Of a stretch of 64,000 nucleotides of DNA, positions 5,964 to 63,584 are shown piece by piece. Where the stretch lies: positions 150,412,001 through 150,476,000 of the forward strand of contig NC_043000.1 in assembly GCF_006345805.1 (NCBI RefSeq). The letters run 5' to 3'. This stretch comes from Octopus sinensis. Lineage: Eukaryota. The notes under the pieces are model-generated. The model had not been told where the DNA came from. It saw nothing but the letters and a program-made list of their open reading frames with translations, and did not search any database. Positions within the stretch are counted from its first letter, which is position 1. Each line of letters starts with the position of its first letter. The position numbers were made by a program, and so were the translations under genes.

Positions 5964-6021
<58 letters not shown>

Positions 6022-6041
6022 ATATATATATATATATAATG

Positions 6042-6086
<45 letters not shown>

Positions 6087-6181
6087 ATGTATATGTAATA
6101 TTAATATATATATATATATATATGTATATATATGAATATATATATGTATATGTATTATATATATATATATAATATATATGT

Positions 6182-6231
<50 letters not shown>

Positions 6232-6342
6232 TAATATATATATATATATATAATGTATATATATATATATAATATTATATATATATTATATAATATATAT
6301 ATATATATTAATATGTATATATATATATATATATATATATCT

Positions 6343-6539
6343 ATATAAAATATTATTAGAGACAAAACACTATTTTGCAAAACACACAGGAAAGACTTAA
6401 TCAATACTAAAATTTTAATAAATAGTCAAAAAAACTGCCAGCCCTCAGTTTTTTTGACTATTTATTAAATTTTATGTATTGATTAAGTCTTTCCTGTTGT
6501 TTTGCAAAATAGTGGTTTTGTCTCTAATAATATTTTATA
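6343..6539. repeat. Palindrome with arms of about 95 bp
   Basis: 6343-6438 is the reverse complement of 6446-6539, with few mismatches. Confidence 0.85.
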
Positions 6540-7393: not shown

Positions 7394-7525
7394 CTTAGTT
7401 AAAAGAAAGAAAATAAAACAAAATATTAGTACTGATATATATATATATATAGTATATATAGTATATATATATATATATATATTATATATATTATAAAATA
7501 TATATATATTATATATATATATATA

Positions 7526-7585
<60 letters not shown>

Positions 7586-7604
7586 TATATATAATATATA
7601 TATA

Positions 7605-7635
<31 letters not shown>

Positions 7636-7643
7636 GTAGTATA

Positions 7644-7677
<34 letters not shown>

Positions 7678-7908
7678 TATGGTAGATAGATATATATATA
7701 TATATATAGTATATAATATAGATATATATATATAGTATTATTATATATATTATATATATTATATATATATAATATATAATATATATATATATTATATATA
7801 TATATATATAATAATATATATAGATATATATATATATATAATATATATATATATATATAGATAGATATATATATATATATAGTATATATATATATATATT
7901 ATATATTA

Positions 7909-7961
<53 letters not shown>

Positions 7962-28900: not shown

Positions 28901-29690
28901 CTTACGCATATCCTCAGCAGTCACAGCCCATGTTTCACTACCATGTAGCATGGCTGTTCGTACACACACACATATAAGCACTTACACACTCTCTCATCTA
29001 TATATATATATATATATCATCATCATCATCATCATCATCGTCGTCTAACGTCCGTTCTCCATGCTAGCATGGGTTGGACGGTTCGACCGGGGATCTGGGA
29101 AGCCAGAAGGCTGCACCAGGCTCCAGTCTTATCTGGCAGTGTTTCTACAGCTGGATGCCCTTCCTAACGCCAACCACTCCGTGAGTGTAGTGGGTGCTTT
29201 TTACGTGCCACCTGCACAGGTGCCAGGCGAGGCTGGCAACGGTCACGGTCGGATTGGTGTATTTTATGTGCCACCGGCACGGAAGCCAGACGAGGCGGTG
29301 CTGGCATCGGCTACGAGTCGGATGGTGCTTTTTACATACCACCAGACCAGGGATCCTGGCTGGTTCAATTCGATTTCGATTTCGCTTGCCCCAACATGTC
29401 TTCGCAAGCAAGGGGGTTGGCATGGGTGCCTGTTGTACGGTCAGATTGGTGTATTTTACGTGCCACCGGCACGGAAGCCAGCGGAGGCGGCACTGGCATC
29501 GGCCACGAGTCGGATAGTGCTTTTTACGTACCACCAGACCAGGGAACCTGGCTGGTTTGATTCGATTTCGCTTGCCCCAACATGTCTTCGCAAGCAAGGG
29601 GGTTGGCATGGGTGCCTGTCGTACGGTCAGATTGGTGTATTTTACGTGGCACGGAAGCCAGTGGAGGCGGCACTGGCATCGGCCACGAGT

Positions 29691-37591: not shown

Positions 37592-40500
37592 CATATATAC
37601 TACAGGCTTCTTTCAGTTTCCGTCTACCAAATCCACTCACAAGGCATTGGTCGGCCCGGGGCTATAGCAGAAGACACTTGCCCAAGATGCCAAGCAGTGG
37701 GACTGAACCCGGAACCATGTGGTTGGTTAGCAAGCTACTTACCACACAGCCACTCCTGCGCCTTTGCAAAGAAAAATTTTGATAAAATAATAGTACTAAC
37801 CTGTACTGCTTATATTAATAGGTCGTTCCTCATGGGATCTAGGTGGGACTTTGCCTTCTTTTTTCATTTTCATCCGCAGTTCATCAGGTGACATTTTTTT
37901 TTCTCTTTGGTGTTTTTCAAAATCAGGTAAATCAATCTGTTCAACAAGAAAATCTTTGTCATTCTAGATAAACCTTTAACATAGCAAATTTATATTTCCT
38001 TAATAGCTTTATAAAACTAAGAAAATACAGCAGGAGTGGCTGTGTGGTAAGTAGCTTGCTTGGTTCCGGGTTCCGGGTTCAGTCCCACTGCGTGGCATCT
38101 TGGGCAAGTGTCTTCTGCTATAGCCCCGGGTCGACCAATGCCTTGTGAGTGGATTTGGTAGACGGAAACTGAAAGAAGCCTGTCGTATATATGTATATAT
38201 ATATATGTATGTGTGTGTGTGTTTGTGTGTCTGTGTTTGTCCCCCTAGCATTGCTTGACAACCGATGCTGGTGTGTTTACGTCCCCGTCACTTAGCGGTT
38301 CGGCAAAAGAGACCGATAGAATAAGTACTGGGCTTACAAAGAATAAGTCTCGGGGTTGATTTGTTCGACTAAAGGCGGTGCTCCAGCATGGCCGCAGTCA
38401 AATGACTGAAACAAGTGAAAGTAAGTAAAGTAATACAAAACTAAAATATGCCTTAAATAAACCTGGATGAAGTTTCAGAAACAAAACTGAAGAGGTTTTG
38501 GTTTTGCTAATTTATATAATCTTTCTGAATCTGCACAGAAAATGCTTAAAGATGGACAAAATTGTTTTTATTGTTGTTTATGCAAGCATTCTATGTTGCA
38601 ATATTCAATTATTATATATTTAGCAACTGTATGGAACAGTCATTGTAATACATTAATCTTTTAGCTTTAACCCTTTAGTGTTTAAACCGGCTATATCCGG
38701 CTCAAATATTCTACTCATTTTATGCTCAAACTGGCCAGAACCAGCATCTCACACCTACCCTGCAATGTCATTCTAAAAATAAACAATTACATCTTTCAAA
38801 TCTTGAAGCTACAAGATAATACCAGATTAATTTTTTAAAATGTAAATGAATAAAGATTACTTCTGACATATTAATTCGAACACTAAAGGGTTAAACTGTC
38901 CACAGCTAGCTCAAATATTCTATTTGTTTTATGTTAAAACTGACCAGATCTGGCATCTCGCACCTGTCCTACAATCTCATTCTAAAAATATACAATCACA
39001 TGATCAAAATCTCTAAGCTACAAAGATAATGCATGATTAATTCTAAAACTGTGTAAATAAATAAGCAAGGATTTAGAGTAACATAATTGAACATTGGACT
39101 TAACTTGCTATCATAATGTGAAAAGCACCATTCGAGCATGGCCATTGCCAGTGGCACCTGGCTGGCTCCTGTGTCAGCGGCATGTAAAAAGCACCATTCA
39201 AGCATTGTCAATGCCAGTGCTGCTTGACTGGCCCCCCTGCCAGTGGCCCATAAAAGGCACCCGCTACACTCTTGGACTGGTTGGTGTTAGGAGGGGCATC
39301 CAGCTCTTGAAACCTTGCCAGATCAGATTAGAGGCTGCTGCAGCTTCCTGGCTTGCCAGTCCTCAGTCAAACTGTCCAACCCATGCCAGCATGGAAAGCG
39401 GACATTAAATGATATTGATGACAATGAATAACAAACAAGGTATCAAAAGACAAATTGATGATCTGTTAACATGCCAAGAGAATTACTAATTGCAAAATAA
39501 TGTCGCCATATGTTAAGCATTAAGAACAATAATGTTTACAGATTATCAGAATTCCAGTTGTACTTAATTCATTTCAACGAGCAGAAAATAAACATATTGC
39601 CAACCTGAATTATTCTTAGAAATAGTTTTGCAAAGTGTCATATAATCTTAAAATTAGGATGAAGAGACACAATGACAATCAGAACAATGAGTATCACATA
39701 ATCAAAATCTATAATTTACAAAGATAATGCAATCTTATAATGAGTCCTTCTTAGGTTGATTTATAATTGGAAATAATGGACTGTCAAGAAAACTGGAAGC
39801 TATTTTAGAAATAAATATGCCACATATAGTACTACGTACTACATTCAATTTCTATAATATCGACCATAAAGTGAAAAAGAGAGCAATAGATAAAACATTG
39901 TAATAAACTAATGTTATTCTTTGATTTGAAGATTTTGTACATATTGTTTGTCTGGTCCACGTGCAGGTGGCACGTAAAAAGCACCATCCGATAGTGGCTG
40001 TTTGCTAGCCTCGCCTGGCACCTGTGCCGGTGGCATGTAAAAAGCACCCACTAGACTCACGGAGTGGTTGGCGTTAGGAAGGGCATCCAGCTGTAGAAAC
40101 ACTGCCAGATCAAACTGGGCCTGGTGCAGCCATCTGGCTTCCCAGACCCCAGTTGAACCATCCAACCCATGCCAGCATGGAAAGTGGACATTAACCTTTT
40201 AGCATTTAAACCGGCCATATCCGGCCAAAAGTATTCTGCCTGTTTTATGTTCAAACTGGCCATATCTGGTCTCTCACACCAACCCTACAATATCATTTTA
40301 AAAAATTAACAGCTACCTCGTCAAAATCTTATAGCTACAAAATAATGCATGATTAGCTCAAAACAGTATGGAGGAAAAAGCATTAATTTTAGCAGAATAA
40401 TGCGAACACTAAAGGGTTAAATGATGATGATGATGATGTTTTACCTTCAAAAATTTTCTTCTTCTTTCTTTTCGGAATTTTGGATTGTAATGTTTTGAAG

Positions 40501-45544: not shown

Positions 45545-47415
45545 CCATCCATCATCGCAGATAAAAAATAAATAATTTCCTGCCTGCTTTTTTTTACGTA
45601 AATCAGAAACGATTTCGTTCCGGCATTCGACAGACGGGAGGAAGCGAAACTCCTTTTTCCTCCTTTAAAAAAAACTCACCACATTTCTTTCAATATCTGC
45701 TGTTTTCTCTGCTAACAGACGAAGCAACAAACTCTACAGTAACCAGGTATTATCACCATTACCCTATTCCTATTAATTTTTATTTCAAACCATTATGTTT
45801 TTCCCATCCTTTTCCACACAAAATGCCAACCGAGTCTTGTCATTTTTTTCCTCTCTTTAGAAAGGGATTTCGACATTTCCCGTTCGTCCACTTTTGCCAG
45901 CCGCCATTTACTCTCGTTTTTCATAACGTACATACATATATATATTTTACCAGTATTTTTCCTCTGTAAATTTGTAAAAACCCGTACACTTAATTGCTTG
46001 AGAACTTTACCCATTTGCAATCTGTAGCTTCTTTGTCCAAATTTTTTTGCAGTTTCACTGGATTTTATGCCCGTTTTTATTCCGCACATTTCTGAGAGAG
46101 TTTACTCCGTAAATCTCCCTCTTTCTGTTTTATTCGATAGTCATTGAGCAAGAAAAAACATTAGACATTATTTCAAAGTAGGTATTTATCTTGTTTTCCC
46201 GTCAATTCCAGGCGAATCGAGAGTCTTTCTTCTCTCGTCTCTCCACTTTTACCCGAATGGCCGCCTGCTGCACTGCTACACTCTGCTGCTAGTTCGAGTA
46301 ATTTAATATCGCCTTTTATTCAGGCAATTATCTGACTAATTGAAGATAAATTTCTCTTCCTACCTGTGTCTCATTTCCTTTATTAATGTCTCACGGCTGC
46401 ACCAAGACCTTTACCTTTATCCTGAATGTTCTGCCATAAACATTTTTTTTCTCCTTCACTTTTTGACACAGTTCAGACCGGATGAGACGAGAGAAAGGAA
46501 GGAAGCACGCTGTTTGAGAGACAGAAAAAGACCATAAAAAAGAAGCTAAAACCGACATAATTCCTTTATTTTAAGATTATACTGTCACTCAGTCGTTGTC
46601 ATCTTAATCTTAAATCATCAGTCGAAGTGTATCGGACTGAAATATGTCATCATTTCTGGTTTTAGCTACAGAAATTGCTGCATTTTTGTAGAAGACTGGG
46701 TTCTGATAAATGATAAGTCAGCGTGTTACAAGTTGTCCATGAAGGAACAAATCATGGGCAATCATGAATCCCACTGGCAACAAAAAACCCACCCATTTAG
46801 ACAGACTTCAAGACTTTCCTCTGTATAGAAAGGACGATGATGATCTTCACTATTCTTTCCTGTTTTTTAATTGTCACAAACTAGAAAAGAAATATCTCAC
46901 ACACGATTTGTGCAATTTCCTCTTTTGCTGCAATGGGACATTTTATTTTTAAACTGACCTATATTCAAAGCCGAGAGAGTGTCTCGAGATAACAAAAATA
47001 AATACATAAAAACCACTTGCTTCGCTTGTTCATTGTTTATTATACTATATTATATACACACCAGAAATTTTGATCGTTTCATTGGTGTTTTTCCTTATAT
47101 ACGCCTTAATTTTTTTCATGTAACTCAGAAAGTATGTTCTAGTCCACACCTTGTTTCGGTTAACCTTTTGTATATTATTTCATATTTCATTGGCACAGAA
47201 GAAGCCCCAACATTTCAGCACCAAATAAACTTTAAATTTGTACATTAATCTTATTTTAGTTTTGGTTTTGATGTTAACTTGCGAAAGTTTTAGTTTAGTT
47301 TTTGTATTTCTTTGTCAGTTTCGCTTAAATTAGTCAATCACCCATTTTTCCCCTTACTCTACGATTCACAAGATTTTTAAATCCTTCAATTTCTGTGTTA
47401 CTTGCTACCCGAAAT

Positions 47416-47456
<41 letters not shown>

Positions 47457-47589
47457 TATTTGTTTCTTCTGTGTGATAAACATTTTGCATTGTTTTTATA
47501 AGCTTTTGTATCAACCACAGACTATATATATAGTCTGCCTAATGACTTACGTGATTACTAGTTTAAAATTATTTTATTGCAGCATTTTT

Positions 47590-47650
47590 ATGAGTCAGAA
47601 GGCCCCAAAACCCATATTGTCAGGCCAGCGGCTGAAGACTAGAAAGAGGG
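47590..47650 (+). CDS. BZW1/2: BZW coding exon 1 ([20 protein letters not shown])
   Basis: Acceptor at 47581-47582, 7-nt UTR, then ATG; donor GT at 47651. Confidence 0.93.
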
Positions 47651-50600
47651 GTAAAGTTTGATTTTGATTCTTAAAAATGTCTAATTGTCCTTATAATTGG
47701 TTTGGCTTCTTGATAATATCTGGAAACTAATTTCCAAGATTCTGCAAGTTTCGTCATATATTCTAAGTGCTATTTTATAATTTGCCCCCTTTTTTTTTTC
47801 CTTTGCTAGATGAAAAAGAAAAATACGATCCTTCATCGTTTCGTGATGCCATTATTTTAGGCCTGAATGAGTGTTCAAATGATTTAGAGCAGGTAAGAGT
47901 TGTATTGTTTTTTTTCTATTATTATTATTGAATCAGTCTCTATCCTTTGCTTTTTATACTTCGTTCTCTCAGAATTCTTTCACTTTGGCACCTTTTCTTG
48001 TTACTTTAGTGATTTGTTTAGACGAAAGGCTTGTAAATTATAACTCCAGTTGAAAGGATAATTTTCCATATTTTTGTGCATAGAGTGGCTGTGTTGGTAA
48101 GTAGCTTGTTTACCAACCACATGGTTTCGGGTTCAGTCCCACTGCGTGGCATCTTGGTCAAGTGTCTTCTGCTATAGCCTCGGGCCGACCAAAGCCTTGT
48201 GAGTGGATTTGGTAGACGGAAACTGAAAGAAGCCCGTCGTATATATGTATGTGTGTCTGTGTCTGTCCCCTCCCAACATCGATTGACAACCGATGCTGGT
48301 GTGTTTATGTCCCCGTTACTTAGCGGTTCGGCAAAAGAGACCGATAGAATAAGTACTGGGCTTACAAAAGAATAAGACCCGGGGTCGAGTTGCTCGATTA
48401 AAGGCGGTGCTCCAGCATGGCCGCAGTCAAATGACTGAAACAAGTAAAAGAGTAAAGAGAGATATTTGGAGTTGTTATATGCAGTTAAGTATATACACAC
48501 CATGATTATTATGTTTTAAAGTGAGGAACTTCTGTGTGACTTACTGTTACATTAACTTCTTGTTTGAGATCAAATATTCCTTTATTTCAGTTGGTCTGTA
48601 GTCGCTGATATGACTTTGTGGAGTATGTAATATTACTAGTGTTTATATACATCCTATGTCATTTGTCTAGCTATTTAAGACTGATAACTTTCAGTTGTAA
48701 GCTAATTGCCTTCAGAATAAATCTTGCAATAAATTATATATTTCACTAATCTAATAATCTTAATGGCACTTTTACCTTCATATGACATCCTAAATCTTTT
48801 TGAATTTTAGCAAGAAGAAACTCATTCCTATGCTAAATTAGAACTTACACTGATATAAATTCAGTTCTACGAAAGAATACTGAAATTCCACATACTTCAA
48901 TTTAACATTCAGAACTATGTGGTAAAGTGTAGTTACTTTTTTTTATAGACTGATAATATATATAGTAGTCATATATATTTACCACATAGTTCTGAATGTG
49001 GAATTTCAGTATTCTTTTGTAGAACTGAATTTATATCAGTGTAAGTTCTAATTTAGCATAGGAATGAGTTTCTTCTTGCTAAAATTCAAAAAGATATAAG
49101 ATGTCATATGAAGGTAAAAGTGCCATTAGGATTATTAGATTAGTCTATCTATTATCAGTCTATCAGACTTTACATTGATCAGTGGCCCGGTACAATAGTT
49201 GCAGTTCTGATGATTTAAACTGGTGACTGTGACCAATTGTATAGCACTTGGTATACTATGACTCATCAAAAGTTTTTGTTCTTGCCAATCAGTTTTCTGA
49301 TGTAAAGTTGGCTGCCCTATTGTTGCATAACAAGTTTCAGATATAATTATTATTGAGCTAATTACATAGAAAAATTATTTAATTGTAAATGTTTTCTTCA
49401 TAGGTTATTAAGTATCTTGATACTGCTGGTTCACGTCTTGATTACCGTCGTTATGCTGAGGTGCTGTTTGATATCTTATTTACTGGAGGACAATTAGGTA
49501 AGTTTGTTTTATATACTTTTTTTTTATTGAAATTTATCTTGGTGTAAACCTATTCATGATGCAGTATTATGTTGGTAGTGTTTATTTTTAAAAGATACAC
49601 TCGCGGAGTGGTTGGCGTTACGAAGGGCATCCAGCTGTAGAAACACTGCCAGATCAGACTGGAGCCTGGTGCAGCCCCTGGCTTCCCAGACCCCGATCGA
49701 ACCGTCCAACCCATGCTAGCGCGGAAAACGGACATTAAACGATGATGATGATAGTTGTAATTTTGTCATCAAATTGAAGAGTGGATCCCGATTATTGGAT
49801 ATCTATAAATAAACTACACTTTACCACATAGTTCTGAATGTTAAATTGAAGTATGTGGAATTTCAGTATTCTTTTGTAGAACTGAATTTGTATCAGTGTA
49901 AGTTCTAATTTAGCATAGGAATGAGTTTCTTCTTGCTAAAATTCAAAAAGATTTAGGATGTCATATGAAGGTAAAAGTGCCATTAAGATTATTAGATTAG
50001 TGAAATATATAATTTATTGCAGTAGCCATTAATTGACTGGTTTCAATTTGGCTGGATATTGTCTACATTAAGTGCTTCAGTTATATACCATGAATGGTAA
50101 TGAAAGTATGGTACTGTTGTGTGGTTGGGCTTCTTTAGACTGTAGTTATTCATTTGATTGGTGCAGCTGTAACCAATCCTTAATGGAAATTCCATGTGTC
50201 CCTTGTAAGCACATTTACAAACATCATCATCGTTTAACATCCGCTTTCTATGCTAGCATGGGTTGGACGGTTCAACTGGAGTCTGGGAAGCCCGAAGGCT
50301 GCACCAGGTCAGTCAGATCTGGCGGTGTTTCTACAGCTGGATGCCCTTCCTAACACCAACCACTCCGTGAGTGTAGTGGGTGCTTTTTATGTTCCACCGA
50401 CACAGGTGCCAGACGAGGCTGGCGAACAGCTACGCTCGGATGGTGTTTTTTACGTGCCACCTGCACGGAGGCCAGGCGAGGCTGGCATGGCCGCGATCGG
50501 ATGGTGTTTGTTACACTTTGCAATAAATATATTGACTACCTTATATAGCTATAGATTTTTTTTTTTTGCTTTATGTTCTGGAAGAAGAGTCAGTATCCAT

Positions 50601-53600
50601 GTTTTTAGCTCTCTGAATTTGAAATTAATGCTCTTAATTCTGCTTAAACTGTTTGCTGGCCAATACCTGCAGGAAAGACACGAGCTGGGAACTCATACGG
50701 GTCATTGTTCCAGGAAGGATGGATTGGGTACAGTCATTAGTGTCAGGGTGGTGGTAGTGGACAACAAAAAAAAGAATTGAGAGTGCTGGAGTGGAGATGG
50801 TATAAAATCATCCGTCACTGAAGAGCCAGAGGCCAGTGTAGGAGCAATGGAAAAAAGGCAAAGAGGAAACAGTTGCCTCTGCAGCAGAAACTGGAGTATA
50901 TGTCAGAGTGATTTTTATGCCAGTCAGTCAAGTGGCCTTCCTCTGGATAAGATTTAGGATGACTTTGGTTGCAGCTGCATCACTGACCTACATTTGGGAA
51001 CAATGCTACATTGTGAAAGTCATCTGAGTGTTATAGAACAGGTTTTTATGGAATTATCAAGAAAAGGCTCATATCATAGGCTAATTTTTTTCTGACGATT
51101 TTCCCCACAACCTCACCACTTGTTGCAGTCCCTTATCTTTGTGATGTTTAGCCTCTGCAGATCAGCCTTCACCACTACTTTCTTGGGCCTCCTTTGTATC
51201 AGTGCACTCTTCTCTCTTGTGCACAGTATCTAATTCCTTCCTCTTATATATAGTTTTCTTTTAGTCTATTTATGTTCCAACATTCATACACATGAATTTT
51301 ATGCATCCAATAAAGCATAACCCATTTCTTTTCAGTCTTTGCATTCAAAGCCCACATTTTGCTACTCTGTAATATTTAAACTTTGTATGAGGCTTTATGA
51401 ATAATACTATCTACCCATCACTTGGGGCAAGAATCCTTCAAAATAGCTCCATGAATGTTTTCCATCTCATTTTCCCAATTACTATGATTTGGGGAAGTTG
51501 TAATAATTTTGTCTAATCTTATACATAGTCAATGAGCCTGTACTGCTGTAGTTTGCAGGCTGGTGCAAGATTTATTTTGAAGGCAATTAGAAAGAATATA
51601 GAGCAAAGCAAATGAGGAAATGAAAGCAGTTTGGCTTCCAAAAAATGTTTTTATTTCTTCGTTTGCTTTGTGTTATCTTCTGTTAATGTAATAATTCTTA
51701 CATCAAGAGTATTCACTGATATTGTCATAATTTTTAAATATATAGAGGCCGATGCCAGCGCCGCCCCGACTGGCTTCTGTGCCGGTAGCACATAAAGAGC
51801 ACCATCCGAACGTGGCCGTTGCCAGCGCCGCCTTGGCTGGCTTCCGTGCCGGTGGCACGTTAAAAGCTCCAACCGATCGTGGCCGATGCCGGGCCCCCCT
51901 GGCACCTGTGCAGGTGGCACGTAAAAAGCACCCACTACACTCGCGGAGTGGTTGGCGTTAGGAAGGGCATCCAGCTGTAGAAACTCTGCCAGTTCAGACT
52001 GGAGCCTGGTGCAGCCCCTGGCTTCCCAGACCCCGGTTGAACTGTGCTAGCGCGGAAAATGGACGTTAAACGATGATGATGATAGAAAAAGAATATTTAA
52101 AATTTTCTCCAGTATTTAGAGGGATGTGATTTTTGCAGTATAGTGTTAATACTTCACCTTTTTGTAATCTTTACTTATTTTAACTCTGGCTATTAAAATG
52201 CTCTATCTATGATTATACTTAAAGCAGTTTCTCTAAATTTTTAGTTTCTTGATAAGGAATAACCCCATTGCTTTTCAGTGGAACTGGTTAATGTTGCTGT
52301 GAGCATTGAGGCTAAAAGTTGGCATATTTTTTTCAATGTTTGTCATATAACTCACACCCACACCACTGAAATAGTTACATATTGAAGGCTGCAATCAAGT
52401 TGTTTTATTAGTTCTCAATGTCGAAGACCTCACCCAGATCACTGATTATGGCCCATGGGTGGATGTTGTTTACCTTTACTTTGCTAAAGCTTTTGATTCT
52501 GTGTCACACAAAAGACTTATGGCAAAACTCTGCAATGGGTGTGAAAGATGATCTTTTTAACTGGTTGGTGTCCTTCATTCTCAGCCGAAAAGAGGTAGCG
52601 ACTGTTCTTGGTCCCCTTTTGTTTGTTGCATATTTTAATGACATTAGATGCTAACTTAAAGAATGCCACAGTCCTGAAATATACAGATGACACCACCAAA
52701 GTGTAACTTGATAAAAAGGGAAGATCCTGAACACTATAGATCTATCTTGCAATTGGACCTGGACACACTGCAGCAATGGTTCATGGACTGGTAACACAAG
52801 CTGGCTGTGGACAAATGTAGCATCATGCATTTTGGGAGGAAAAACCTAGCACCTACATACTCCCTCCACAATAATATCAAGAAGCCTTCTTGTGAATGTG
52901 ACCTGATCATTACTGACAAGTGATTTGCACTGGACAAAAGCACATCTCTAAAATTGTCAAGAAGACCGAGGGTGTCTTGGCATCACTTGGCAAGACTTTT
53001 GTCAGCTGTTCTCTAGCTATCTTTTTAAAGTTGTATATGACTATGGTGCGGCCACGCTTGGAATTTGCATCACCAGTCTGGAACCCCTATCTTGCTCAGT
53101 ACATTGTTCTGGAAACTATACAGAGATGTGCAACCAAGCAAATATCCTCCATCAGGCATCTACCATACTCTGGATGCCTTGCTTCCCTGGACATGGATAC
53201 ATTGAAGCTCCGACGTCTGTAACTGTCTTGGTAAAAACCTACAAAATTATTAACCATCATGCCAACAACCACCTTGAGCACCATTTTGAATTCCATGTGT
53301 TAAACATGTGTAGGCATGCTTGCAAAGTTAGAAAACAGCATAGCTCCCATGACTTTTGGAAACATTTTTTCACAGTCAGTTGCTAAAGCATGGAACAAAC
53401 TACCTGTATCAGTTGTTGGCTAATGAGACATTGCAGCCTGAAATTCGCCAACACTACACCTGATATCCACCCTCCATACACATGTCTCATACACTTCGCT
53501 TTCCTGACATTTGTACATAATTCTATATATTATGCGTGCACCTTTTGATAAGTTGTAGTGCACCTGAGCACCTATTGTCAGTATTTTAACCATCTAGTTT

Positions 53601-54901
53601 ATGATGAATATTTTACTTATAATATATTTTTTAATTACAATCCCACTCTCAAGGAGTGGAGGTGGGGGACAAGAAAATGGTATAATAGTTTTAAAACTTA
53701 GAAATTAGTAACAGGTGTCCAGTTTCTGATTGAATCTTATATACATTGGTATTAAGATAAAAAAAAAACTAACAAAATTTGCTCAGGTACGGTATGTGTT
53801 TGACATTGCAGTGTCTAGTCCTATTGCTGTTCAACAAAATGGCTGTTAAAAAAAAAACTTCCATCCCTGCCTTAATTGCAACAATTATATGGTTGAAATT
53901 TCATAATTCATTTTCATTGAATTATCTTTACTAAATTGAAATTACATTTCTCTTTTTAATGTTAAGCACCTGGTGGGTTAATTGTTCAAGACACTGATCC
54001 AACTAAACCCTCTCGAGCTGATATATGTGTCTTTACTGCCGAAAAGAATGTAGAAACATTAAAGGCATTTTATGAAGTAAGTTCCATTTTGTTCATTAAT
54101 GTTATGTTTCCAATCATTATTTGTGGTTAATCTTTTGAGACAGCGTGTACATTTTTTTTTTTCATAAGTATTTAGACAAATAAATTTCGATGCTTATTAA
54201 ATACCATTCATTGATTTTGTATTTAAATTTGTTTCAGGTGTTCTTCAAGCTAATTAGACGGTACAAGTACCTTGAAAGATCTTTTGAAGATGAGTTGCAA
54301 AAAGTAAGTTGACTAAATTTTACACTTTTTGTTTATTCAGTGTGTGTGTGTACCAGTATATCCCTTTGTATCTCTTGAGCTTTAATAAATCTATTTGCTG
54401 GTATTGTGCAGAGATTAAGGCCTTTGCAAGTACATAAGTCATTGATAAGCACTTTCCCATATTCTAATTTTATTAATTTGTTAAATGTCTTCAGTTTCAC
54501 TATCACAGCCACTGGAGCACTTATGCTTGTGACTTAACTAAAACTGAAATTGAAATATTTTCCCCCTCGTTTTTCTTATCTCTGAGAATTAGGAGAGACT
54601 ACTTTCAAATTTGTTCTTATCACTTGCTTTATTTTCTTTTTAATTATTAGCCACAAACCCCAACTTTCAAAACATAACTGGTTTCAGTTTCCATTATTTT
54701 CATCTGACCTCTGGGGAACTTATTGCATTTTCAACTTCTCTGATCCTTCTTAGCTTTAGTTAATGTTTATATATATATATAAACATTGGCCTGCTCGCTT
54801 AGCCAGCGGAGTGGCGTCATTTAAAGGCTAAAGCAATGCGAAGCGCATTGTGACCAGCGATGTATAGCAACATCTGATAGCCTGGTCGGAAAAAAAATAT
54901 A

Positions 54902-54960
<59 letters not shown>

Positions 54961-57900
54961 CCATTTAGTAATGCATGTTAATCTTGTATAAAATGTGAAA
55001 GAGTATTTTATTGACTTCAATTATTTTGCAGATTCTCATTTACCTCAAAGCTTACAGTGAGGAAGAGCGCTGTAAGTTGGCTATCATCACAGGGCTGTTC
55101 TTGGCAAATGGCCTGTGCTCAGCAAAAATTCTCTCAAGCCTCTTTGAACAACATGTTGTTAAAGAAGGTATGTTGAAATAATAAACTGAACCTATTTTGT
55201 GTGATTTATTTCATGAATTTCCATTTCTAATTTTCAATTTCAATAAGAATTAGCAATCACTTTATTTGATCAGTTTTATAAAGAATTCTGAAACTTTAGG
55301 GATATTTGAATAACTTTTTTTTTTTTAATTTAAGGTTTATCATTGGAATTTTCCACTATCATGTTCCGAACATGGTTGAATGAAAAAGATATTAATAGTG
55401 TGAGTGCCGCTATGAAACGTTCTCAAATTGAAAACCGCCTTTTGGTAAGTTTCCATTCAATCCATGCTTAAATGTTTATATAATGTCTCTTTTTACTTTA
55501 ATTTGTAAACTGATACTCATACTTTTTTTTCTTTTGTCCGTGCAGGAACTATTTCCAATAAATAAACGCAGTCAGGAGGCTTTTCTCAATCATTTCCAAG
55601 AAGCTGGTCTTGGACCAGTTGCTAATTTACAAGTTAGTTGTATTTCTATCATTTCACCTTTTGATCTTGAATTTTTGATTTGTTATATATTTAAAAATCG
55701 TTTTCTTTTTTTTTAAATGTTGACTTTATTTGAAAATCTCGATTCTCCATTTCTCTTTTTTTTTTTTTTTAAGCGTGTCCAACAATCAGCCGAAGTAAAG
55801 AAAGAGTTACAGAAGGACTTGACAAGAATGATCAATGATAATGAACCCATAAAAGAGGTATTGTTAAAAATTGCTTCATTTTAAAATGTTATAAATTCAT
55901 CATAGTTTAGGTATCTTAGTATTTTTAGTAATGATAATGAACCCATAAAAGAGGTATTGTTAAAAATTGCTTCATTTTAAAATGTTATAAATTCATCATA
56001 GTTTAGGTATCTTAGTATTTTTAGTAATGATAATGAACCCATAAAAGAGGTATTGTTAAAAATTGCTTCATTTTAAAATGTTATAAATTCATCATAGTTT
56101 AGGTATCTTAGTATTTTTAGTAATGATAATGAACCCATAAAAGAGGTATTGTTAAAATTGCTTCATTTTAAAATGTTATAAATTCATCATAGTTTAGGTA
56201 TCTTAGTATTTTTAGTAATGATAATGAACCCATAAAAGAGGTATTGTTAAAAATTGCTTCATTTTAAAATGTTATAAATTCATCATAGTTTAGGTATCTT
56301 TGTATTTTTAGTTTGTCTTACTTGTAAAGCAATTTCATCTATCAGAAATTCATTTGAATTGGTGGGTGGGGTGACCACTTCTGAGTTGGCCTTTTGCAAA
56401 CATAAAATGTTAGGTAGCAGTTTGACTTATAGCATAAGCATATAATATTTCACAAGTAAAGCTTTTGTGGACTTCCCTGCTCAGTAAAAGATGATGCCCA
56501 ATAAACTTGTCAATTTTAGAGAACATTTAATTTTAGAATAAAGGTTGCTTTTCAGTCTTATGGCAGTTATGTCAATAGCCCTTAATCTGATTTTAATTTT
56601 TTTTAATACCAAGTCAGATATTGTGCAGTATTGAAAAAATAATTCTGTAACAGCAGTTTATTATTGATGTGCAGATTGTCTAAATTCATGTAAATAAGTG
56701 TGCTGTTGAATTACATTTATTTCTCACTTCTTTTGGTTATATGCTATGTAGTTTCTTAACAATAAACTAAGAAACCTGTATATAAATTTGAGTTTAGTAA
56801 ACTTTTTTTCTTTTTGTGTGTATAACTTGGGAGGTAAATTTTTTTTCTTTTATCAACATAATAGAGGAAAATACTTACACAATTTGCTCGTGGCTTAACA
56901 TATATACATGCCTAGGCACAGCATAGCTGAATGGTTAAGTTTACTTCAAAATCATGATGGCCCCAGGCTCAATACCATTGTATAGCATTTTCCTTGTCCT
57001 CAGATTAACTCGTACTTTGTGAGTAAAATTGGGGTGGTAAAAACTATAGAAGCCATTTGGATGACATCTCACTTGATTCTGCCTTTAATATTACATTGAG
57101 TACGTGTTTCTGTGTAATGCTAATTCAATGAGTTGGTAACTGGGTAGAATAAAGAACTGAATTCTCACTATCAAAGCTGAAGAGATTGTGTGTGTATATA
57201 CATATTTTTTACAGAGGAAAGCATTACCTAAATAGGTTGGTTTTTTGCCAGATATACAGACAGGCATGAGAATAAATTTGTATGCTATAAATTTTTGTCT
57301 TTGAGAATTATGTCAGGTACAATAAACTTTAAGATTGTCATTAAATGCTTGATTAAATTTGAGAAAAATCGTTTTTTTTTTGCAGATAATTGCTCATTTA
57401 AAAGAATACATGGCTAAGCACAAGCTCTCTGATCATGAAATGGTTGTCTTGGTAAGTAGATTTCTCATTAAATTCCAAATTAGCATTTTAATTGAAAACT
57501 TATGTTCTTGATAACAGCTTTGTATGTCATTTCAATTTTTTCAAATGGATTAAGTATAGACTCTTTAACTCTTAAAAAAAATAAAGGTCTCATTTGGATA
57601 TATTTCTTGCTTATAGTCTGTATAAAATTGTGATGGTAACAGAAAAAGATATTGCACAAATACTTTTAAAGCTTTTTGTCAGTGAACAGGTCGCGGTCTT
57701 AAAGTGACGAAAATATTTTGACAAATTAAACTTAAATGTTGAAGTGAATCAAACGGCTTTTGTGTGTTTCTTAAATGGCTTATAAACACCTTCCACGCTG
57801 CAATTGTTTTCGTTTCAGCACACGATCTCAGATCAAATCACTTGCTATGCGAGTACATCTCCGTAATTTTAAAGCTTTATTTTATGGAAAATCTATTTTA

Positions 57901-59850
57901 AAGTTAAATGGTAAATATTCATAAATACTATGAATTGCCTAAAGCGTTTCTCTTACAATGCATTGGAAATGAGAGATAACAATGTTAGCATTGATTTTCC
58001 AAGAACATTGAGGGAGATCACTCTGATTTCTACAGTTGGTATATGTGGACAGTATTGGAATCATTTTCATTGGTTTGTAAGACTTTCTCTTGTGCTGCTA
58101 AATTGGTTTGTTCCAACAGTTGTCTGAACAAAACTGGGCAGTCTTTTAACTCAGTTTCTGTTTTTGTAGTATGGCTGATGTATTATTCTGACAGCTTCAG
58201 TATTCAGGAAACAACAAAAACTGGAGTTTATCTACAATAAATCCTTTGACATAGCCTCAAGACTGATTAAAAGTAGATTACAGACAACTAAACCAAATGG
58301 TTCTGTAATTGAGTGTCCTGAAAGGTCAGGTCCTATGCCAGAGTGAATTTTCTACTGCATCTGACATTGAGGTGTTTAATAAGGTTTTTCGTGCTTGTAT
58401 TCACCCTGTAGGATTGATGCCATTAACATTATTCACGAACTGTTGCAAGTTGATGGCTGCAGAAGAAATGTGGAGTGTGGGGAGACATTCCAGAGTTGGA
58501 AGCATTGGGTGGGGGTAGGGGATGGCAAGTGAGTCAGGAGTGCTGTGTGTTGCAATGGAACAAAACCTACTAGCTTTGAGAAGAGGCTGCCATAATAGCA
58601 CTTAAGTCAGACAAGACAGCAAGAGGTTGGAGTATATTTTCAAGTGACGTAGTGTCAAGTGGCTTTTATTTTTTTTTTTTATAGATGTAATCTGATGTTG
58701 TGCCATGAGTGCTTGTACAGCGTTAGTAGTTGCTTGATGGGAACTAATATATTTTCTAGCATTAAGATGTAGTCTTCACTATGTTGAGGATGTGTATTCA
58801 CCAGGAAAACTCACCTCAATAATGGTTATGTCTGGCATTTGAAGTGAAACATCATCATCATTTAGTGTCCGCTTTCCATGCTAGCATGGGTTGGACGGTT
58901 CAACTGGGGTCTGTGAAGCCAGAAGGCTGCACCAGGCCCAGTCTGATCTGACAGTGTTTCTACGGCTGGATGCCCTTTGTAACGCCAACCACTCCGTGAG
59001 TGTAGTGGGTGCTTTTTACGTGCCACCCGCACAGGAGCCAGACAGTTTTATATAAATTTGAAGTTGAGAATTTTGTTAGCAAATATGTTTCTAATGTATT
59101 AAGGGTTATTGAGGATTCACCTGTTGCAGATTTTAAGTCTATGAATGGGTTTCAAGATATTCTTTTTTTCATTAGGTTTGGAATACAGTAATGGGAACTG
59201 TTGAATGGAACAAAAAGGAAGAACTCGTAGCAGAGCAAGCTCTCAAGCATTTGCGTAATTACTGTCTTCTGTTTACTGCTGTAGCAAAAACTGAAAAATC
59301 GGAGCTCAACCTCATGGTGAGAATCCAAGAATACTGCTACGACAATATCAATTTTATGAAGGTGTTTCAAAAAATTATAATACTCTTTTATAAATGTAAG
59401 CATTTTCTTTTTACTCATATCATTGTTGTGAAAATTGTGAATTTTTTTGCTAATTCTTACTCTAATGCTTTCATGTGGGGAGAGGCCAACAAGTGCACTT
59501 ATGGGTTTCTTTCTGTAAAAAATGGCCTTTGGTGAGGGATGGGCACTGAATAAGATTTTGTTAGCAAGTGATTGTATAGACCGTTTGATTGATATACAAT
59601 TCAATTTTTATTTTTTCTTAAGCTGAGGTCCTGTCTGAAGATGTGGTCCTAAAGTGGTATCGTGATAGCCCTTCTTCAAAAGGAAAAGGTATCTTTGTTA
59701 GCCAAATGAAGAAATTTGTGGAATGGCTAAAGAGTGCTGAAGAAGGTAAAAGAAATTTTCTTTTGTCTATTTCAATTTAAATTCTCTTAAAAAAAAATTT
59801 TTTTCATATTTTATCTCTTGTTTTTAATTTCTCTTTCAGAATCTGATTAG
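47590..59850 (+). CDS. BZW1/2: Basic leucine zipper and W2 domain protein / eIF5-mimic protein (5MP, krasavietz-like); complete, 13 coding exons, 416 aa
   Basis: Exons 47590-47650, 47810-47892, 49404-49497, 53967-54076, 54238-54303, 55032-55167, 55335-55444, 55546-55632, 55774-55857, 57386-57451, 59176-59395, 59623-59745 and 59840-59850 total 1251 nt in one frame, all GT-AG. Motifs [41 protein letters not shown] and [14 protein letters not shown]. Likely co-ortholog of vertebrate BZW1 and BZW2. Confidence 0.96.
47810..47892 (+). CDS. BZW1/2: BZW coding exon 2 ([13 protein letters not shown]...LEQ)
   Basis: AG/GT flanks, 83 nt, in frame. Confidence 0.95.
48725..50021. repeat. Triple inverted-repeat system: A 48725-48934, B 48978-49144, C 49812-50021
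   Basis: C is the reverse complement of A over 210 bp with 2 differences by eye. B is a shorter reverse complement with a 15-nt deletion. Confidence 0.92.
49404..49497 (+). CDS. BZW1/2: BZW coding exon 3 ([31 protein letters not shown])
   Basis: AG/GT flanks, 94 nt. Confidence 0.95.
52420..53570 (+). pseudogene. CR1-clade LINE reverse transcriptase remnant with 3' UTR
   Basis: [59 protein letters not shown]. The 3' end is related to 25070-25410. Confidence 0.85.
53967..54076 (+). CDS. BZW1/2: BZW coding exon 4 (APGG...TLKAFYE)
   Basis: AG/GT flanks, 110 nt. Confidence 0.93.
54238..54303 (+). CDS. BZW1/2: BZW coding exon 5 ([22 protein letters not shown])
   Basis: AG/GT flanks, 66 nt. Confidence 0.95.
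55032..55167 (+). CDS. BZW1/2: BZW coding exon 6 (ILIYLKAY...QHVVKE)
   Basis: AG/GT flanks, 136 nt. Confidence 0.94.
55335..55444 (+). CDS. BZW1/2: BZW coding exon 7 (GLSLEF...[10 protein letters not shown]...NRLL)
   Basis: AG/GT flanks, 110 nt. Confidence 0.94.
55546..55632 (+). CDS. BZW1/2: BZW coding exon 8 ([10 protein letters not shown]...VANLQ)
   Basis: AG/GT flanks, 87 nt. Confidence 0.93.
55774..55857 (+). CDS. BZW1/2: BZW coding exon 9 ([14 protein letters not shown]...NEPIKE)
   Basis: AG/GT flanks, 84 nt. Its 3' end is the first unit of a 96-bp tandem repeat. Confidence 0.93.
55834..56312 (+). repeat. Five tandem copies of a 96-bp unit spanning the BZW exon 9/intron 9 junction
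   Basis: Units start at 55834, 55930, 56026, 56122 and 56217; nearly identical. Confidence 0.95.
57386..57451 (+). CDS. BZW1/2: BZW coding exon 10 ([22 protein letters not shown])
   Basis: AG/GT flanks, 66 nt. Confidence 0.9.
59176..59395 (+). CDS. BZW1/2: BZW coding exon 11 ([26 protein letters not shown]...LFYK), W2 domain
   Basis: AG/GT flanks, 220 nt; overlaps ORF-track 59191-59535. Confidence 0.97.
59623..59745 (+). CDS. BZW1/2: BZW coding exon 12 ([13 protein letters not shown]...[10 protein letters not shown]), aromatic/acidic boxes
   Basis: AG/GT flanks, 123 nt. Confidence 0.96.
59840..59850 (+). CDS. BZW1/2: BZW terminal coding exon (ESD-stop)
   Basis: Acceptor TTTCTCTTTCAG, then AA TCT GAT TAG. 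Confidence 0.85.
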
Positions 59851-61056
59851 TCTGGGACAGTTACCAAGTACTTATTGTTCAGCGACATGGTCCCTCTACT
59901 ATTAAAATTGTTAACAGACTGATACTGCCAAAGATTTTTACTTATTCCTACAGCATATAAAGCCCAGAAGAAATAACTATTTTGGATTTGGACTAATAGA
60001 TATTTGCGAAACTCCCAGAACCTTTTACACAGGTGTTGAGTTTTGCAATAAAAGTTATGAAATTGCCAACAAAGCTTTCACTTTGTCATTTCACTTACGT
60101 TTTCACAATTTACCATAAAAGTAATGTTTTAGTTTTTCATGTAAATTTTTTTTCAACTGCTTTTGTGACTGCATCCCTTCCCTCCTCTTGTCTATAATTT
60201 CACATTGAAATGATATCCTTTTTTTCCCCCCTTCTCCTAATGAGATACAGGAAGTGATTACATGCTGGAACACATTGATCTCTGGTTATCCAGATTGGTT
60301 TGGTAGCAACTTTTTAGAGGGATAAATGGTGGACATTTTTTAACTTGAAAAACAGTTTTTGTAAGTGACAGAACTTCTAATAAAAGTGTCTAATGGTAAA
60401 TGAATTTTCCAAACTTTTCTGTGTTTATCCCATTTATTTTTCATTCCTTACAAAAGTTTTCTTTTAACTTAGTAACTTGGAAATTCCTTTTCTAAACTTA
60501 ATATCTTTTGTCATTTTCAATAATTTCTCAGACTTTCAAACTTCTAGTTTTTTTTTTGTGCTTTTAATGGAATGATTGTTTTCATGCTAGTTAAAACTGG
60601 GACTTATTCCAACTTTTAAGCATGATGACTTAAAGAAGTAAAAAAAAATTTTTTTAAATGAACTGATACAATGGAAACAAATCAAAGTATTGAAATTAAA
60701 ATAAAACAAGCTTCGGTGACAATTTTTATTTATTACTGTACAGATTACAACTGCTTAATTTTTTTTTTTTTTTTTTTTTAAATTTCAAGCAATTTTTCTA
60801 GATGAGTTCTGAAAGTGTTTATTACAATTAGTTTTGGCAAAATATTTGATGTATTTTTGTCCCATTCTTTTCTGAAGATGAAACATGAGCTCGCATGCAT
60901 ATATGTATATAATATATAGGGATGGCTGGTTGGTTTGATATCTTATATAGAAAACAATGTTTCAATGGCTAAATATTTAGATCACTTAGCTGAAGAAAAA
61001 AAAAAAATAGATGCATTTGGCTACATAGCAGTTTTAGAAATTCAGGCTTTTCAGTT
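59851..61056. terminator. Convergent 3' UTRs of BZW and RSU1 with candidate poly(A) signals
   Basis: AATAAA on + at 60047, 60379, 60700; AATAAA on - at 60433, 60725, 60729, 60818. No recognisable TE in the interval. Confidence 0.5.
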
Positions 61057-61138
61057 TCACTTTTTGGAATATTTTTTGGGCCGATCTGTTTTCCGTTGGG
61101 CTGGTTCAGGCTTAGCTTCCATGTGACGACCATACAAA
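61057..61138 (-). CDS. RSU1: RSU1 terminal coding exon ([13 protein letters not shown]...YSKK-stop)
   Basis: Acceptor TTTTTATTCTTAG, TGA at 61059-61057. Confidence 0.92.
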
Positions 61139-63584
61139 CTAAGAATAAAAACAAGGAAATTTTTTTTGTAAAGCTTGAAAAGCTACTTAAATAGTGTTAG
61201 AATTGCTTTTTATTTGGTCTTATTTTGGAACAGAAATTGTAATTATATAACAAAGTAACGATTATAAATTATTGCATAGTAAATCTAAAAATGGCTTAAC
61301 CCTTTCATTACCAACTCGGCTCTGAGTACAAATGTCTTCATTTCATAAGTTTTGAATTAAAATCTTCCACCAAACCTTAGTCACAATTTATGTTCCTAAC
61401 ACTGGCTGAATGATAACCAAGTTATTTTACTAAATTATTTATTATATTAACCCTTTAGTGTTCAGATTACTCTGTTAAATGTAATACCTTTTCACTCAAA
61501 TTGTTTTGAATTAGTCATGCATTATCTTATAGCTTTTGAGGTTTCAATGATGTGATTGTTTATTTTTAGAATGTCAATGTAGGTTAGGAGTGAGAGGCTA
61601 GATATCGCCAGTTTGAATATAAAACATGTAGAATATATTGGGCCGGATTTGGCCGGTTTAAACACTAAAGGGTTAAAGTAATTGAAAGAAATACAGAATA
61701 TCTCAAAATAAATACAGTAACGAAAGGGTTAATAAAATTTTTGCTGCATTTCAAATTTGAAATTCACATGTTAAGTATTCTGCAGTTCTACAAAATTTGA
61801 ATTTTAAATAACAAAACTTTTTATCATAAAATTTATGATTGTGTACTTACTATCTGTATTTATCAGAGCGGATATATTCAAATACATGTGATACACCAAT
61901 CTGAAGCTGGTCACCAATCAGGGCTACCCATGGGTTATTTTCACACCGAAAAATTTGTTTTGTTCCATATAAATCAAGTTGACCTGTAAATTATTTTTTT
62001 AAATAGAATTCTCGTGAATATATAAACGATTCATTTTATATGGCTGTTTATAATCCTCACTCTTCCATGTTTGCATGAGTTGGATGGAGTTGAGCCAGGT
62101 TATTTAATGCCAAGCAAGGTGATATTTCATCATGCTCAGAGATTTGCAGAACATGGGAAATGAAGGGACATTGATTTACAACATTTAACACTGTCGGGAC
62201 AGAGACTCAAAAACATACACAAACAAGCCTCTCTTAGTTTCAGTCCACCATATCCACTCACGAGGCTTTAGTTGGCTTCGGGTTATAATAGACACCCAAA
62301 GTGCCATGCACTGGCACTGAACCCAGAACCATGTGGTTGGGAAGCAAACTACTGTACAGACATAAGTAACTGCAAATATGATTTAGACTTAGCTCAGTAG
62401 AAATGGGTGATAAAGTACCCTCTAGTACCTACATTCGCCTCCTTATGAGAGCTCAAAATCTCTTGTGGAAGCGCCATCCAACCAAAGTACAAATATATGG
62501 GAAACTACCACCTGTGTCATCTCTTGTGAAAGGTAAGAGTTCAGTTTGCTGGACATTGTTGTAGAGCTGGAAAAGAGGTAATTTCTACTCTTCTCCTCTG
62601 GAAGCCATCTACTCGCAACACCAGACCAGAGGACGCACACTCTCCTACCCTGATGTAATCTCCAGGGATACAGGCATCCAGCAACAGGACCTCCGTAATG
62701 CCATAATGGAACGTGAGGTCTGGCGTAGCATGGTAAATTCCATTGTCTCGACCACGGTCGAACAATGATGATGATGATGACCCTCTCTAGTGAGCTGTAT
62801 TTGCTGTGTTACTTCTCTGTAAATATTACTCATAAGATAGGTATGATGGGATCTATTGATGTTTTGTTACTCTTCAGTTCATGAAGTAGCAATATTTTGC
62901 AGAGTTTATCTGAATGTGAGCAAATGCTAGAAATAATTTCACCTTTTATTTAACTTAATTGATATTAATGCTAACTTTATCAATGTGTCAATGTTTAGCT
63001 GACTAAAAGCTATACATATTAGGAAACCAAATTCAAAGTCACAATGTATATACCTAATATGACAATCTTACCTAGTTCAGGTGGTAAAGTGCTCAGCCGA
63101 TTTCCTTGAATATATAATTCCCTTACGCGTTGAAGGCTGCCTATTTCTTTTGGAAGGGTATGAAGATCATTGTCTCTTAAAGACAACTAGAAAGAAAAAA
63201 AATGTTATTGTGTCATGTCAGTTCATAAGGTTCCAAATTTGTATTAAACTTTTAATATTTGACAATTTTAAAGTTCAATAGCTTGGATTTAAGGTATATT
63301 ATCTATGATTGCTGAATGATTATTTCAGATTTAAATAATCAGCATACATAATATAACCTATAACCTAACTATTGAACAGTTATTTTCATGTTAATGTTTT
63401 GAATAATAATTCATTATCTTAATGAAGATTTAACTAGTAATTGTATATCTACTTTGTGACGTAAAAGGTTTCTATAGGAAGTAGGATTTTGCCGTACTCA
63501 CAATTTGCAAATTTTGAAACTTTCCTATCTCAGGAGGAATAAGTGTAAAATCATTGTCGCCAAGATATAAGGCACGCAGTGTTT
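61057..63584 (-). CDS. RSU1: Ras suppressor protein 1 (LRR protein), 3' part; join(63502-63584, 63072-63186, 61851-61983, 61057-61138)
   Basis: In-frame GT-AG exons give [45 protein letters not shown]-..[27 protein letters not shown], close to human RSU1 as recalled. The 5' exons lie right of the window. Confidence 0.95.
61851..61983 (-). CDS. RSU1: RSU1 exon (GQLDLYG...ENNPWV...[10 protein letters not shown])
   Basis: Acceptor AATTTACAG, donor ATA|GTAAGT, 133 nt. Confidence 0.95.
62440..62780 (+). mobile_element. Second RTE-clade family, RT C-terminus and (GAT)n tail
   Basis: Degenerate [37 protein letters not shown] followed by (GAT)n. Confidence 0.7.
63072..63186 (-). CDS. RSU1: RSU1 exon ([16 protein letters not shown]...LPPEL)
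   Basis: Acceptor TTCTTTCTAG, donor TAG|GTAAGA, 115 nt. Confidence 0.95.
63502..63584 (-). CDS. RSU1: RSU1 exon ([28 protein letters not shown])
   Basis: Acceptor TATTTACAG, donor ATT|GTGAGT, 83 nt. Confidence 0.94.

Follow-up and report, generated by a model that had tools for sequence, protein, structure and literature searches.

A minisatellite spanning an exon/intron boundary reiterates a weak splice donor in the BZW/5MP gene of Octopus sinensis

The stretch of Octopus sinensis DNA described here, called the window throughout, comprises 64,000 nucleotides (contig NC_043000.1, positions 150,412,001 to 150,476,000, forward strand) and carries a gene for BZW, or eIF5-mimic protein (5MP). 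Within this gene, a minisatellite of five 96-bp units begins inside the ninth coding exon and continues into the following intron, so that the donor splice site of the exon is present five times. All positions refer to the window, of which the part from 45590 to 61850 corresponds base-for-base to CM016862.1:150457590-150473850 of GCA_006345805.1. The gene model was obtained with a tblastn probe and manual placement of splice sites, which gave an uninterrupted frame of 416 amino acids. A slash in a sequence marks a splice site or a junction. The features at the centre of this report are the following:

near 45640-45746, plus strand: exon of the 5' untranslated region (5'UTR) of BZW, placed by mapping an O. 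bimaculoides mRNA contig onto the window
47590-59850, plus strand: coding part of BZW / eIF5-mimic protein (5MP), 13 coding exons, 416 aa, hand-built model
55774-55857, plus strand: ninth coding exon, 84 nt, phase 0/0, with donor GAG/GTATTG between 55857 and 55858
55834-55857, plus strand: exonic part of unit 1, the closing 24 nt of coding exon 9, encoding NDNEPIKE
55834-56312, plus strand: minisatellite, 96 bp x 5.0 (Tandem Repeats Finder), the first unit of which straddles the exon/intron boundary
57386-57451, plus strand: tenth coding exon, 22 aa, preceded by tttttttttgcag, the lone acceptor available to all five donors

The host gene is BZW/5MP, since both the N-terminal 5MP HEAT domain and the C-terminal W2 domain are present: Pfam detects HEAT_5MP1_2 (PF25504) at residues 15-259 (E=7.5e-96) and W2 (PF02020) at residues 342-416 (E=2.7e-21). 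The product of the hand-built model matches the O. sinensis proteins XP_029634513/4 (named BZW1) exactly and is 99% identical to eIF5-mimic protein 2 of O. bimaculoides, and the exon boundaries seen in an O. bimaculoides mRNA contig agree with the model. The exon that an initial annotation of this DNA had called exon 9 is the ninth coding exon, but, given the upstream 5'UTR exon, the tenth exon of the transcript; we keep the coding-exon numbering. Between O. sinensis and its sister species O. vulgaris, which also carries the array (see below), the coding sequence differs at 2 of 1251 nt, as against 21 differences expected at the intron rate. This shows strong purifying selection on BZW in both array-bearing species, so that the gene has kept its function alongside the array.

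Tandem Repeats Finder describes the minisatellite with a period of 96, 5.0 copies, 99% matches, 0% indels and a score of 944. Direct reading agrees with the program and with the initial annotation: the copies lie head to tail, with starts at 55834, 55930, 56026, 56122 and 56217, and each unit comprises the final 24 nt of coding exon 9, the donor GAG/GTATTG and 71-72 nt of intron, in the layout AATGATAATGAACCCATAAAAGAG/GTATTG...GTATTTTTAGT. Units 1 to 5 measure 96, 96, 96, 95 and 96 bp. Three of them are identical, unit 4 has lost one A from a run of five (A5>A4), and unit 5 carries a single A>T change (cttag>ctttg). The donor 9-mer is invariant in all five units. The junction of the array is blunt (...TTTTTAGT/AATGAT...), and inspection by eye found no microhomology at the duplication junction (left C/A, right T/T). 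A piece of 41 nt from the intronic part of the unit has four exact occurrences in the window, all of them within the array, and none in 100 shuffles, so that the match is far beyond chance. An origin of the unit from a dispersed repeat or transposon was considered and rejected, because its intronic part is confined to the array within the window; a transposon is countered further by the outgroups, in which this part is ordinary single-copy intron sequence.

Each of the four extra copies offers a 25-nt pseudo-exon that opens with an in-frame TAA, at the positions that the initial annotation had given. As predicted from the sequence, they are:

55929-55953, plus strand: pseudo-exon 1, 25 nt, TAATGATAATGAACCCATAAAAGAG; pseudo-acceptor tatttttag/ on the upstream side, pseudo-donor 2 between 55953 and 55954
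56025-56049, plus strand: pseudo-exon 2, 25 nt, with pseudo-donor 3 between 56049 and 56050
56121-56145, plus strand: pseudo-exon 3, 25 nt, with pseudo-donor 4 between 56145 and 56146; the next mini-intron is 70 nt long (A5>A4)
56216-56240, plus strand: pseudo-exon 4, 25 nt, with pseudo-donor 5 between 56240 and 56241, in the final unit with cttag>ctttg

The mini-introns between them had been put at 71 nt, which holds for the first three; the fourth measures 70 nt, unit 4 being short by one A.

The orthologous exon boundary of O. vulgaris carries an array of the same kind. Assembly GCA_951406725.2, made from another specimen with Oxford Nanopore (ONT), Illumina and Hi-C data (PMC10700109), contains four perfect 96-bp units (100% identity) and shares the junction TTTTTAGT/AATGAT. 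A single copy with homologous flanks is found in O. bimaculoides, in Argonauta hians and in a more distant octopod known from whole-genome shotgun (WGS) contigs. The last of these (Logan contigs of the WGS runs SRR11869384, SRR11869385, SRR11869390, SRR11869391 and SRR11869394) is ~85-88% identical to O. sinensis in introns and has one copy at the exon 9 boundary, with the donor GAG/GTAATA. The counts, taken from one assembly per species and hence a measure of variation between species, are thus five in O. sinensis, four in O. vulgaris and one in each of three outgroups. The array is a lineage-specific minisatellite, and its copy number is variable between sister species.

Published split times are ~34 million years ago (Mya) for O. 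bimaculoides and ~2.5 Mya for O. sinensis and O. vulgaris (as cited in PMC10700109). With a single copy in three outgroups and arrays in both sister species, the sequences compared show that the duplication arose after the former split and before the latter. At the BZW locus, the two array-bearing species differ by 1.7% substitutions. In the unconstrained parts of the two arrays, independent evolution since the split would be expected to have left ~6.9 substitutions, as against a single one found (0 in O. vulgaris, 1 in O. sinensis; P=0.008), and this sole substitution sits in the terminal unit. The homogeneity of the units is what concerted evolution or a recent expansion would leave behind, as in the amphioxus repeats discussed below (PMC3087553).

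To rank splice sites, we used an approximate scoring matrix, not trained on the species, the scores of which (about 3.5 bits for the authentic exon 9 donor) serve for ranking only. Each pseudo-exon has the same weak donor as exon 9 and, by the same matrix, the poorest acceptor in the gene. This pseudo-acceptor (...cttagtatttttag/T) ranks below all 12 real BZW acceptors and has the lowest pyrimidine fraction among them (0.59). Its T at +1 is seen in no real BZW acceptor, and it has upstream AGs at -25, -20 and -11, whereas the real acceptors have no AG between -20 and -3. Because of the competing AG at -11, the exact boundary of the 25-nt pseudo-exons is uncertain. Their size is accompanied by mini-introns of 70-71 nt, compared with 94 nt for the shortest real BZW intron. 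The weakness of the donor is not peculiar to the arrays, as the homologous donors of single-copy species are weak too (GTATTG, GTAATA and GTACAT, all without G at +5), and the O. bimaculoides mRNA contig shows such a single-copy donor spliced normally. A search for RNA structure that might mask or distinguish the pseudo-donors found none (z=0.50).

The annotated BZW proteins of O. sinensis, O. vulgaris and O. bimaculoides all contain the join NDNEPIKE/IIAHLKEY, and donor 1 is likewise used by the O. vulgaris isoform in which the last intron is kept. The O. vulgaris annotation was built from aligned Iso-Seq and RNA-seq data, aligned proteins and ab initio predictions (PMC10700109); the same paper names the Iso-Seq projects PRJNA718058, PRJNA791920 and PRJNA547720 and the bulk RNA-seq set E-MTAB-3957. 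From annotation, coding constraint and analogy with known systems, we infer that by far the most transcripts use donor 1. Regulated poison exons are typically conserved along with their flanks. The pseudo-exons are restricted to the pair O. sinensis and O. vulgaris and so are without the evolutionary conservation expected of poison exons. The initial annotation had spoken of poison micro-exons; with the weakest acceptors of the gene, short mini-introns, annotated use of donor 1, a constrained coding sequence and the published precedents described below, our analysis gives no support to the idea that they are functional as such.

What the initial annotation had said about the consequences of alternative splicing agrees with our predictions. 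In silico, every product except the join of donor 1 to exon 10 stops early, so that four of the five donors would lead to premature termination. Inclusion of one to four pseudo-exons would place a TAA directly after codon 277. Use of donors 2-5 with the upstream units retained would yield a product of 285 aa that ends in a read-through tail, the sequence downstream of any donor being GTA TTG TTA AAA ATT GCT TCA TTT TAA, as had been noted for the distal donors. Both the 277-aa and the 285-aa product would be without the W2 domain, and several exon junctions follow downstream of the predicted stop codons. Where the exon junction complex (EJC) rule applies, transcripts with such stops would be substrates of nonsense-mediated decay (NMD), and any pseudo-exon or distal-donor transcripts would probably be removed in this way. 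Each kind of transcript would be marked by its junction, as follows:

donor 1: ...ATGATCAATGAT...GAG/ATAATTGC
distal donor: ...TTTTAGTAATGAT...GAG/ATAATTGC
pseudo-exon inclusion: ...AAAAGAG/TAATGATAATG

No truncated product of 277 or 285 aa was found among the best 120 protein database matches. A search for transcripts with exons 8-9 plus the read-through tail in the protein database gave one match, to the single-copy WGS contigs of a distant octopod. A query made of the exon 9/10/11 junctions returned only a genomic exon-11 open reading frame from the same distant octopod(s), on contigs that end ~930 nt upstream of exon 11, short of intron 9. In the protein database, the exact O. sinensis protein comes from the NCBI assembly alone; the 416-aa isoform of O. 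vulgaris has no entry there, and the genomic locus of this species was reached through its 424-aa isoform.

The architecture of the array has already been described in human genes and in amphioxus, and the octopus array has the same structural characters. A close comparison is with human F7, intron 7 of which contains a polymorphic variable number tandem repeat (VNTR) of five to nine 37-bp units, with a first monomer that straddles the border between exon 7 and intron 7 (Borensztajn et al. 2006, PMC1557585). All F7 pseudo-donors are functional, and the most upstream donor alone is selected, which the authors read as 5'-to-3' scanning (PMC1557585). In both systems an authentic donor is followed by identical pseudo-donors (4-8 in F7, 4 in O. 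sinensis) that face one acceptor, most pseudo-sites give a premature stop, and copy number is variable (5 versus 4 between the two octopus species) (PMC1557585). The octopus array differs in its unit, which has 96 bp with 24 exonic nt instead of 37 bp with 4 exonic nt, and in that each unit ends in an AG after a pyrimidine run, so that mini-introns and pseudo-exons are formally possible. It also differs in its mollusc host, and in that splicing was tested in F7 and is predicted for the octopus array.

In unit length, the octopus array is closer to two other human minisatellites that, as far as the account in PMC1557585 goes, likewise reiterate an exon/intron junction within the intron and likewise leave the authentic donor as the only one used: LMNB2, with 10-15 units of 100 bp, and intron 4 of PDGFA, with 16-18 units of 81 bp. 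They have far more units and reside in human genes; by this likeness, we would predict that the authentic donor alone is used in the octopus array as well. Two further human minisatellites appear to be leakier. The unit of the one in IFI6 (6-16) is probably short. According to the same account in PMC1557585, the two most proximal of the 25 pseudo-sites of IFI6 are used in addition to the authentic donor, and two pseudo-sites are also used in intron 13 of CBS, where a 31-bp unit occurs in 15-20 repeats. As citations in that account have it, these two share with the octopus array the reiterated donors at an exon/intron border and set a precedent for leakage and for effects of copy number; the difference is that additions of short units can stay in frame, whereas every alternative octopus product would be truncated.

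Among invertebrates, the array resembles the ‘mirages’ of amphioxus, minisatellite-like duplications across exon/intron boundaries of Adh3 and of the globin genes BflGb6 and BflGb9, with units of up to 150-160 bp (PMC3087553). Haplotypes differ in mirage copy number (6 versus 3), concerted evolution excludes the boundary units, and regular splicing is left undisturbed (PMC3087553). The octopus array is, like them, an invertebrate, boundary-spanning and copy-number-variable repeat that is homogenised save for a terminal unit (PMC3087553). Apart from taxon, the difference lies in the side of the exon: BflGb6 has its acceptor side duplicated, and BflGb9 alone resembles the octopus array in being at the 3' boundary of an exon. 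It has been suggested that mirages supply the material from which new exons and introns arise (PMC3087553), and the view of the octopus array as a snapshot of exon birth, also put forward in the initial annotation, is legitimate to this extent; the 25-nt unit, however, starts with a stop and does not keep the frame. That a single internal duplication can create an intron has been demonstrated by experiment (Hellsten et al. 2011, PMC3265369). Such intron creation, in the model of Rogers (PMC3265369; for potato RdRp, PMC4974935), resembles the octopus case in that one tandem duplication supplies ready splice signals. There, however, the duplicated segment is internal to an exon and the original mRNA is restored by the new intron, whereas the octopus duplication added decoy signals within an existing intron and leaves the mRNA unchanged if donor 1 is used. 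What appears peculiar to the octopus array is the new host taxon and gene, together with the reiteration of complete, if poor, mini-intron/mini-exon modules. A search of the literature turned up no account of poison exons in BZW, nor of splice-site minisatellites in cephalopods or in BZW genes.

Together, our data suggest, with a probability that we put at roughly 0.75, that the array is a neutral or slightly deleterious, tolerated minisatellite across an exon/intron boundary, of which the most upstream donor is used, and not a regulatory device. One 96-bp tandem duplication across the boundary of the ninth coding exon founded the array, which afterwards grew or shrank to five units in O. sinensis and four in O. 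vulgaris, with the near-identity of the units kept by unequal exchange, gene conversion or recent expansion. The spliceosome would pick the most upstream of five identical donors, which closes the 84-nt exon and adjoins its purine-rich unique part, and the normal 416-aa protein would result. The four downstream donors and the weak AGs before each of them would be silent or used at a low level, and any alternative products would carry an early stop. Several points weigh against such a model. The authentic exon 9 donor is the weakest of the 12 BZW donors, with 5 of 9 positions matching the consensus, and the five donors of the array are identical. The O. sinensis gene models may rest on protein homology. 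Competition experiments with duplicated donors have given conflicting outcomes, and the scanning rule has been established in mammalian cells, not in molluscs (PMC1557585). In the account of IFI6 and CBS given there, splicing also makes use of the first two pseudo-donors, which makes a degree of leakage plausible.

If donors leak, the array could tune dosage: with decoy donors or 25-nt poison pseudo-exons in use, more units would mean less BZW/5MP. This reading, which we regard as unlikely, draws on the identity and weakness of the five donors, on the fact that each alternative product stops before several exon junctions, and on the different copy numbers of the sister species. It also draws on the use of the first two pseudo-donors in IFI6 and CBS, as related in PMC1557585, and on the title of a study listed in its references, which ties the 31-bp VNTR of CBS to reduced enzyme activity. 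If it were true, the stop-containing fraction of BZW transcripts would rise with unit number, and the 5-unit O. sinensis and the 4-unit O. vulgaris, as well as individuals, could differ. The VNTR would then act as a dial, heritable and quick to mutate, on the level of a factor that determines how stringently start codons are chosen, and would interact with the translational autoregulation of BZW; that such a dial operates in vivo seems doubtful to us. The acceptors are the poorest in the gene, a 25-nt exon between 70-71-nt introns is unfavourable, and the annotated products use donor 1 only. The array is missing from the other octopods examined and is hence no conserved regulatory element, and the long-unit precedents, LMNB2 (100 bp) and PDGFA (81 bp), are cited in PMC1557585 as using the authentic donor alone. 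Moreover, a deeply conserved poor AUG context gives BZW1/2 translational autoregulation (PMC5823381). The octopus start context, cauuuuuAUGa with U at -3 (window 47578-47595, shared by four octopod genomes and by two mRNA contigs), fits this unfavourable context, and the feedback would be expected to buffer modest losses of mRNA. It would ease tolerance of a leaky array and make a tuning role less necessary. The proposal of the initial annotation that copy number tunes BZW output thus finds no support in weak pseudo-acceptors, donor 1 products, a constrained coding sequence and precedents that favour the upstream donor. As far as our analysis goes, the array does not currently reveal new BZW regulation, and any tuning effect is, by analogy, unlikely to be large.

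It has also to be asked whether the extra donors are mildly beneficial, in that U1 small nuclear ribonucleoprotein (snRNP) bound to reiterated weak donors just downstream might aid definition of the small exon, with its weak donor, or protect the 1.5-kb intron. In every octopod examined, no BZW donor is weaker than that of exon 9 (GTATTG, GTAATA, GTACAT), and the array has been kept in both lineages for at least ~2.5 million years. Inclusion of an exon with a weak donor can be rescued by engineered U1 snRNAs directed to the intron just downstream. We nevertheless consider a benefit highly improbable: it is pure inference, O. bimaculoides splices the same weak donor normally from a single copy, and the F7 study reports that the adjacent intron yielded no regulatory element acting autonomously (PMC1557585). 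Finally, the true genome might have one unit, with the array arising from mis-assembly or mis-polishing of long reads. Tandem repeats are error-prone, the loss of 1 bp from the A5 run of unit 4 resembles a long-read homopolymer error, and an aberrantly assembled mirage has been noted in the amphioxus draft (PMC3087553). An assembly artefact is nonetheless very unlikely, as the independent O. vulgaris assembly, from another specimen and technology, has the same unit and junction at the same position in four perfect copies, and as single long reads readily cover an array of 480 bp; the precise figure of five comes from one assembly.

The tolerated minisatellite that we favour is, apparently, the first noted in a cephalopod to reiterate a splice donor. 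It offers a dated origin (~34 to 2.5 Mya), a known single-copy ancestral condition and two different copy numbers. With five identical weak donors spaced by 96 nt, a weak AG before each and one acceptor, its main value is as a natural test substrate, which could show whether the ‘most upstream donor wins’ rule of mammalian F7 extends to a mollusc. It also calls for caution in annotation, since aligners and gene predictors can place the exon 9/10 junction at any of five equivalent donors when a read has less than 25 nt upstream of it.

Two observations concern the BZW gene outside the array. Its synonymous sites are much more conserved than its introns, with 3 synonymous differences at ~259 silent sites between O. 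sinensis and O. bimaculoides, as against 14 predicted from the intron rate of 5.5% (P=0.0004). Candidate causes include RNA editing or splicing enhancers in cephalopods. The O. vulgaris isoform of 424 aa, CAI9720679, was considered as a possible carrier of an extra NDNEPIKE (8 aa = 24 nt), which was rejected, as its difference lies in retention of the 94-nt last intron (equivalent to window 59746-59839). Through this retention, the acidic tail ESD is replaced by 11 residues.

On the minus strand, BZW is flanked by two genes known from public annotation:

~45590-46090, minus strand: upstream neighbour, a Tim44-domain protein
~61057-61850, minus strand: downstream neighbour, a 270-aa protein, the O. 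bimaculoides ortholog of which has leucine-rich repeat matches

Other repeats are frequent in the window. An element resembling a short interspersed element (SINE) is very abundant across the 64 kb, with many copies in both orientations (...GGTGCTTTTTACGTGCCACC.GCACAG.AGCCAGAC...), among them those at 9257-9445, 27981-28267, 29193-29343, 39121-39261, 50379-50514, 51747-51932 and, within BZW intron 10, 58850-59040. Its core of 61-67 bp is itself tandemly repeated 2-4.5 times. At 31166-31464, a 16-bp unit (AGTTTATCTTAAACCT) is repeated 18.8 times with 98% identity. Microsatellites of the type (TA)n, up to ~656 bp long, occupy 5923-6347, 7435-8090 and 14024-14259, and owing to them the GC content falls to 0.22 in the 6-8 kb bin.

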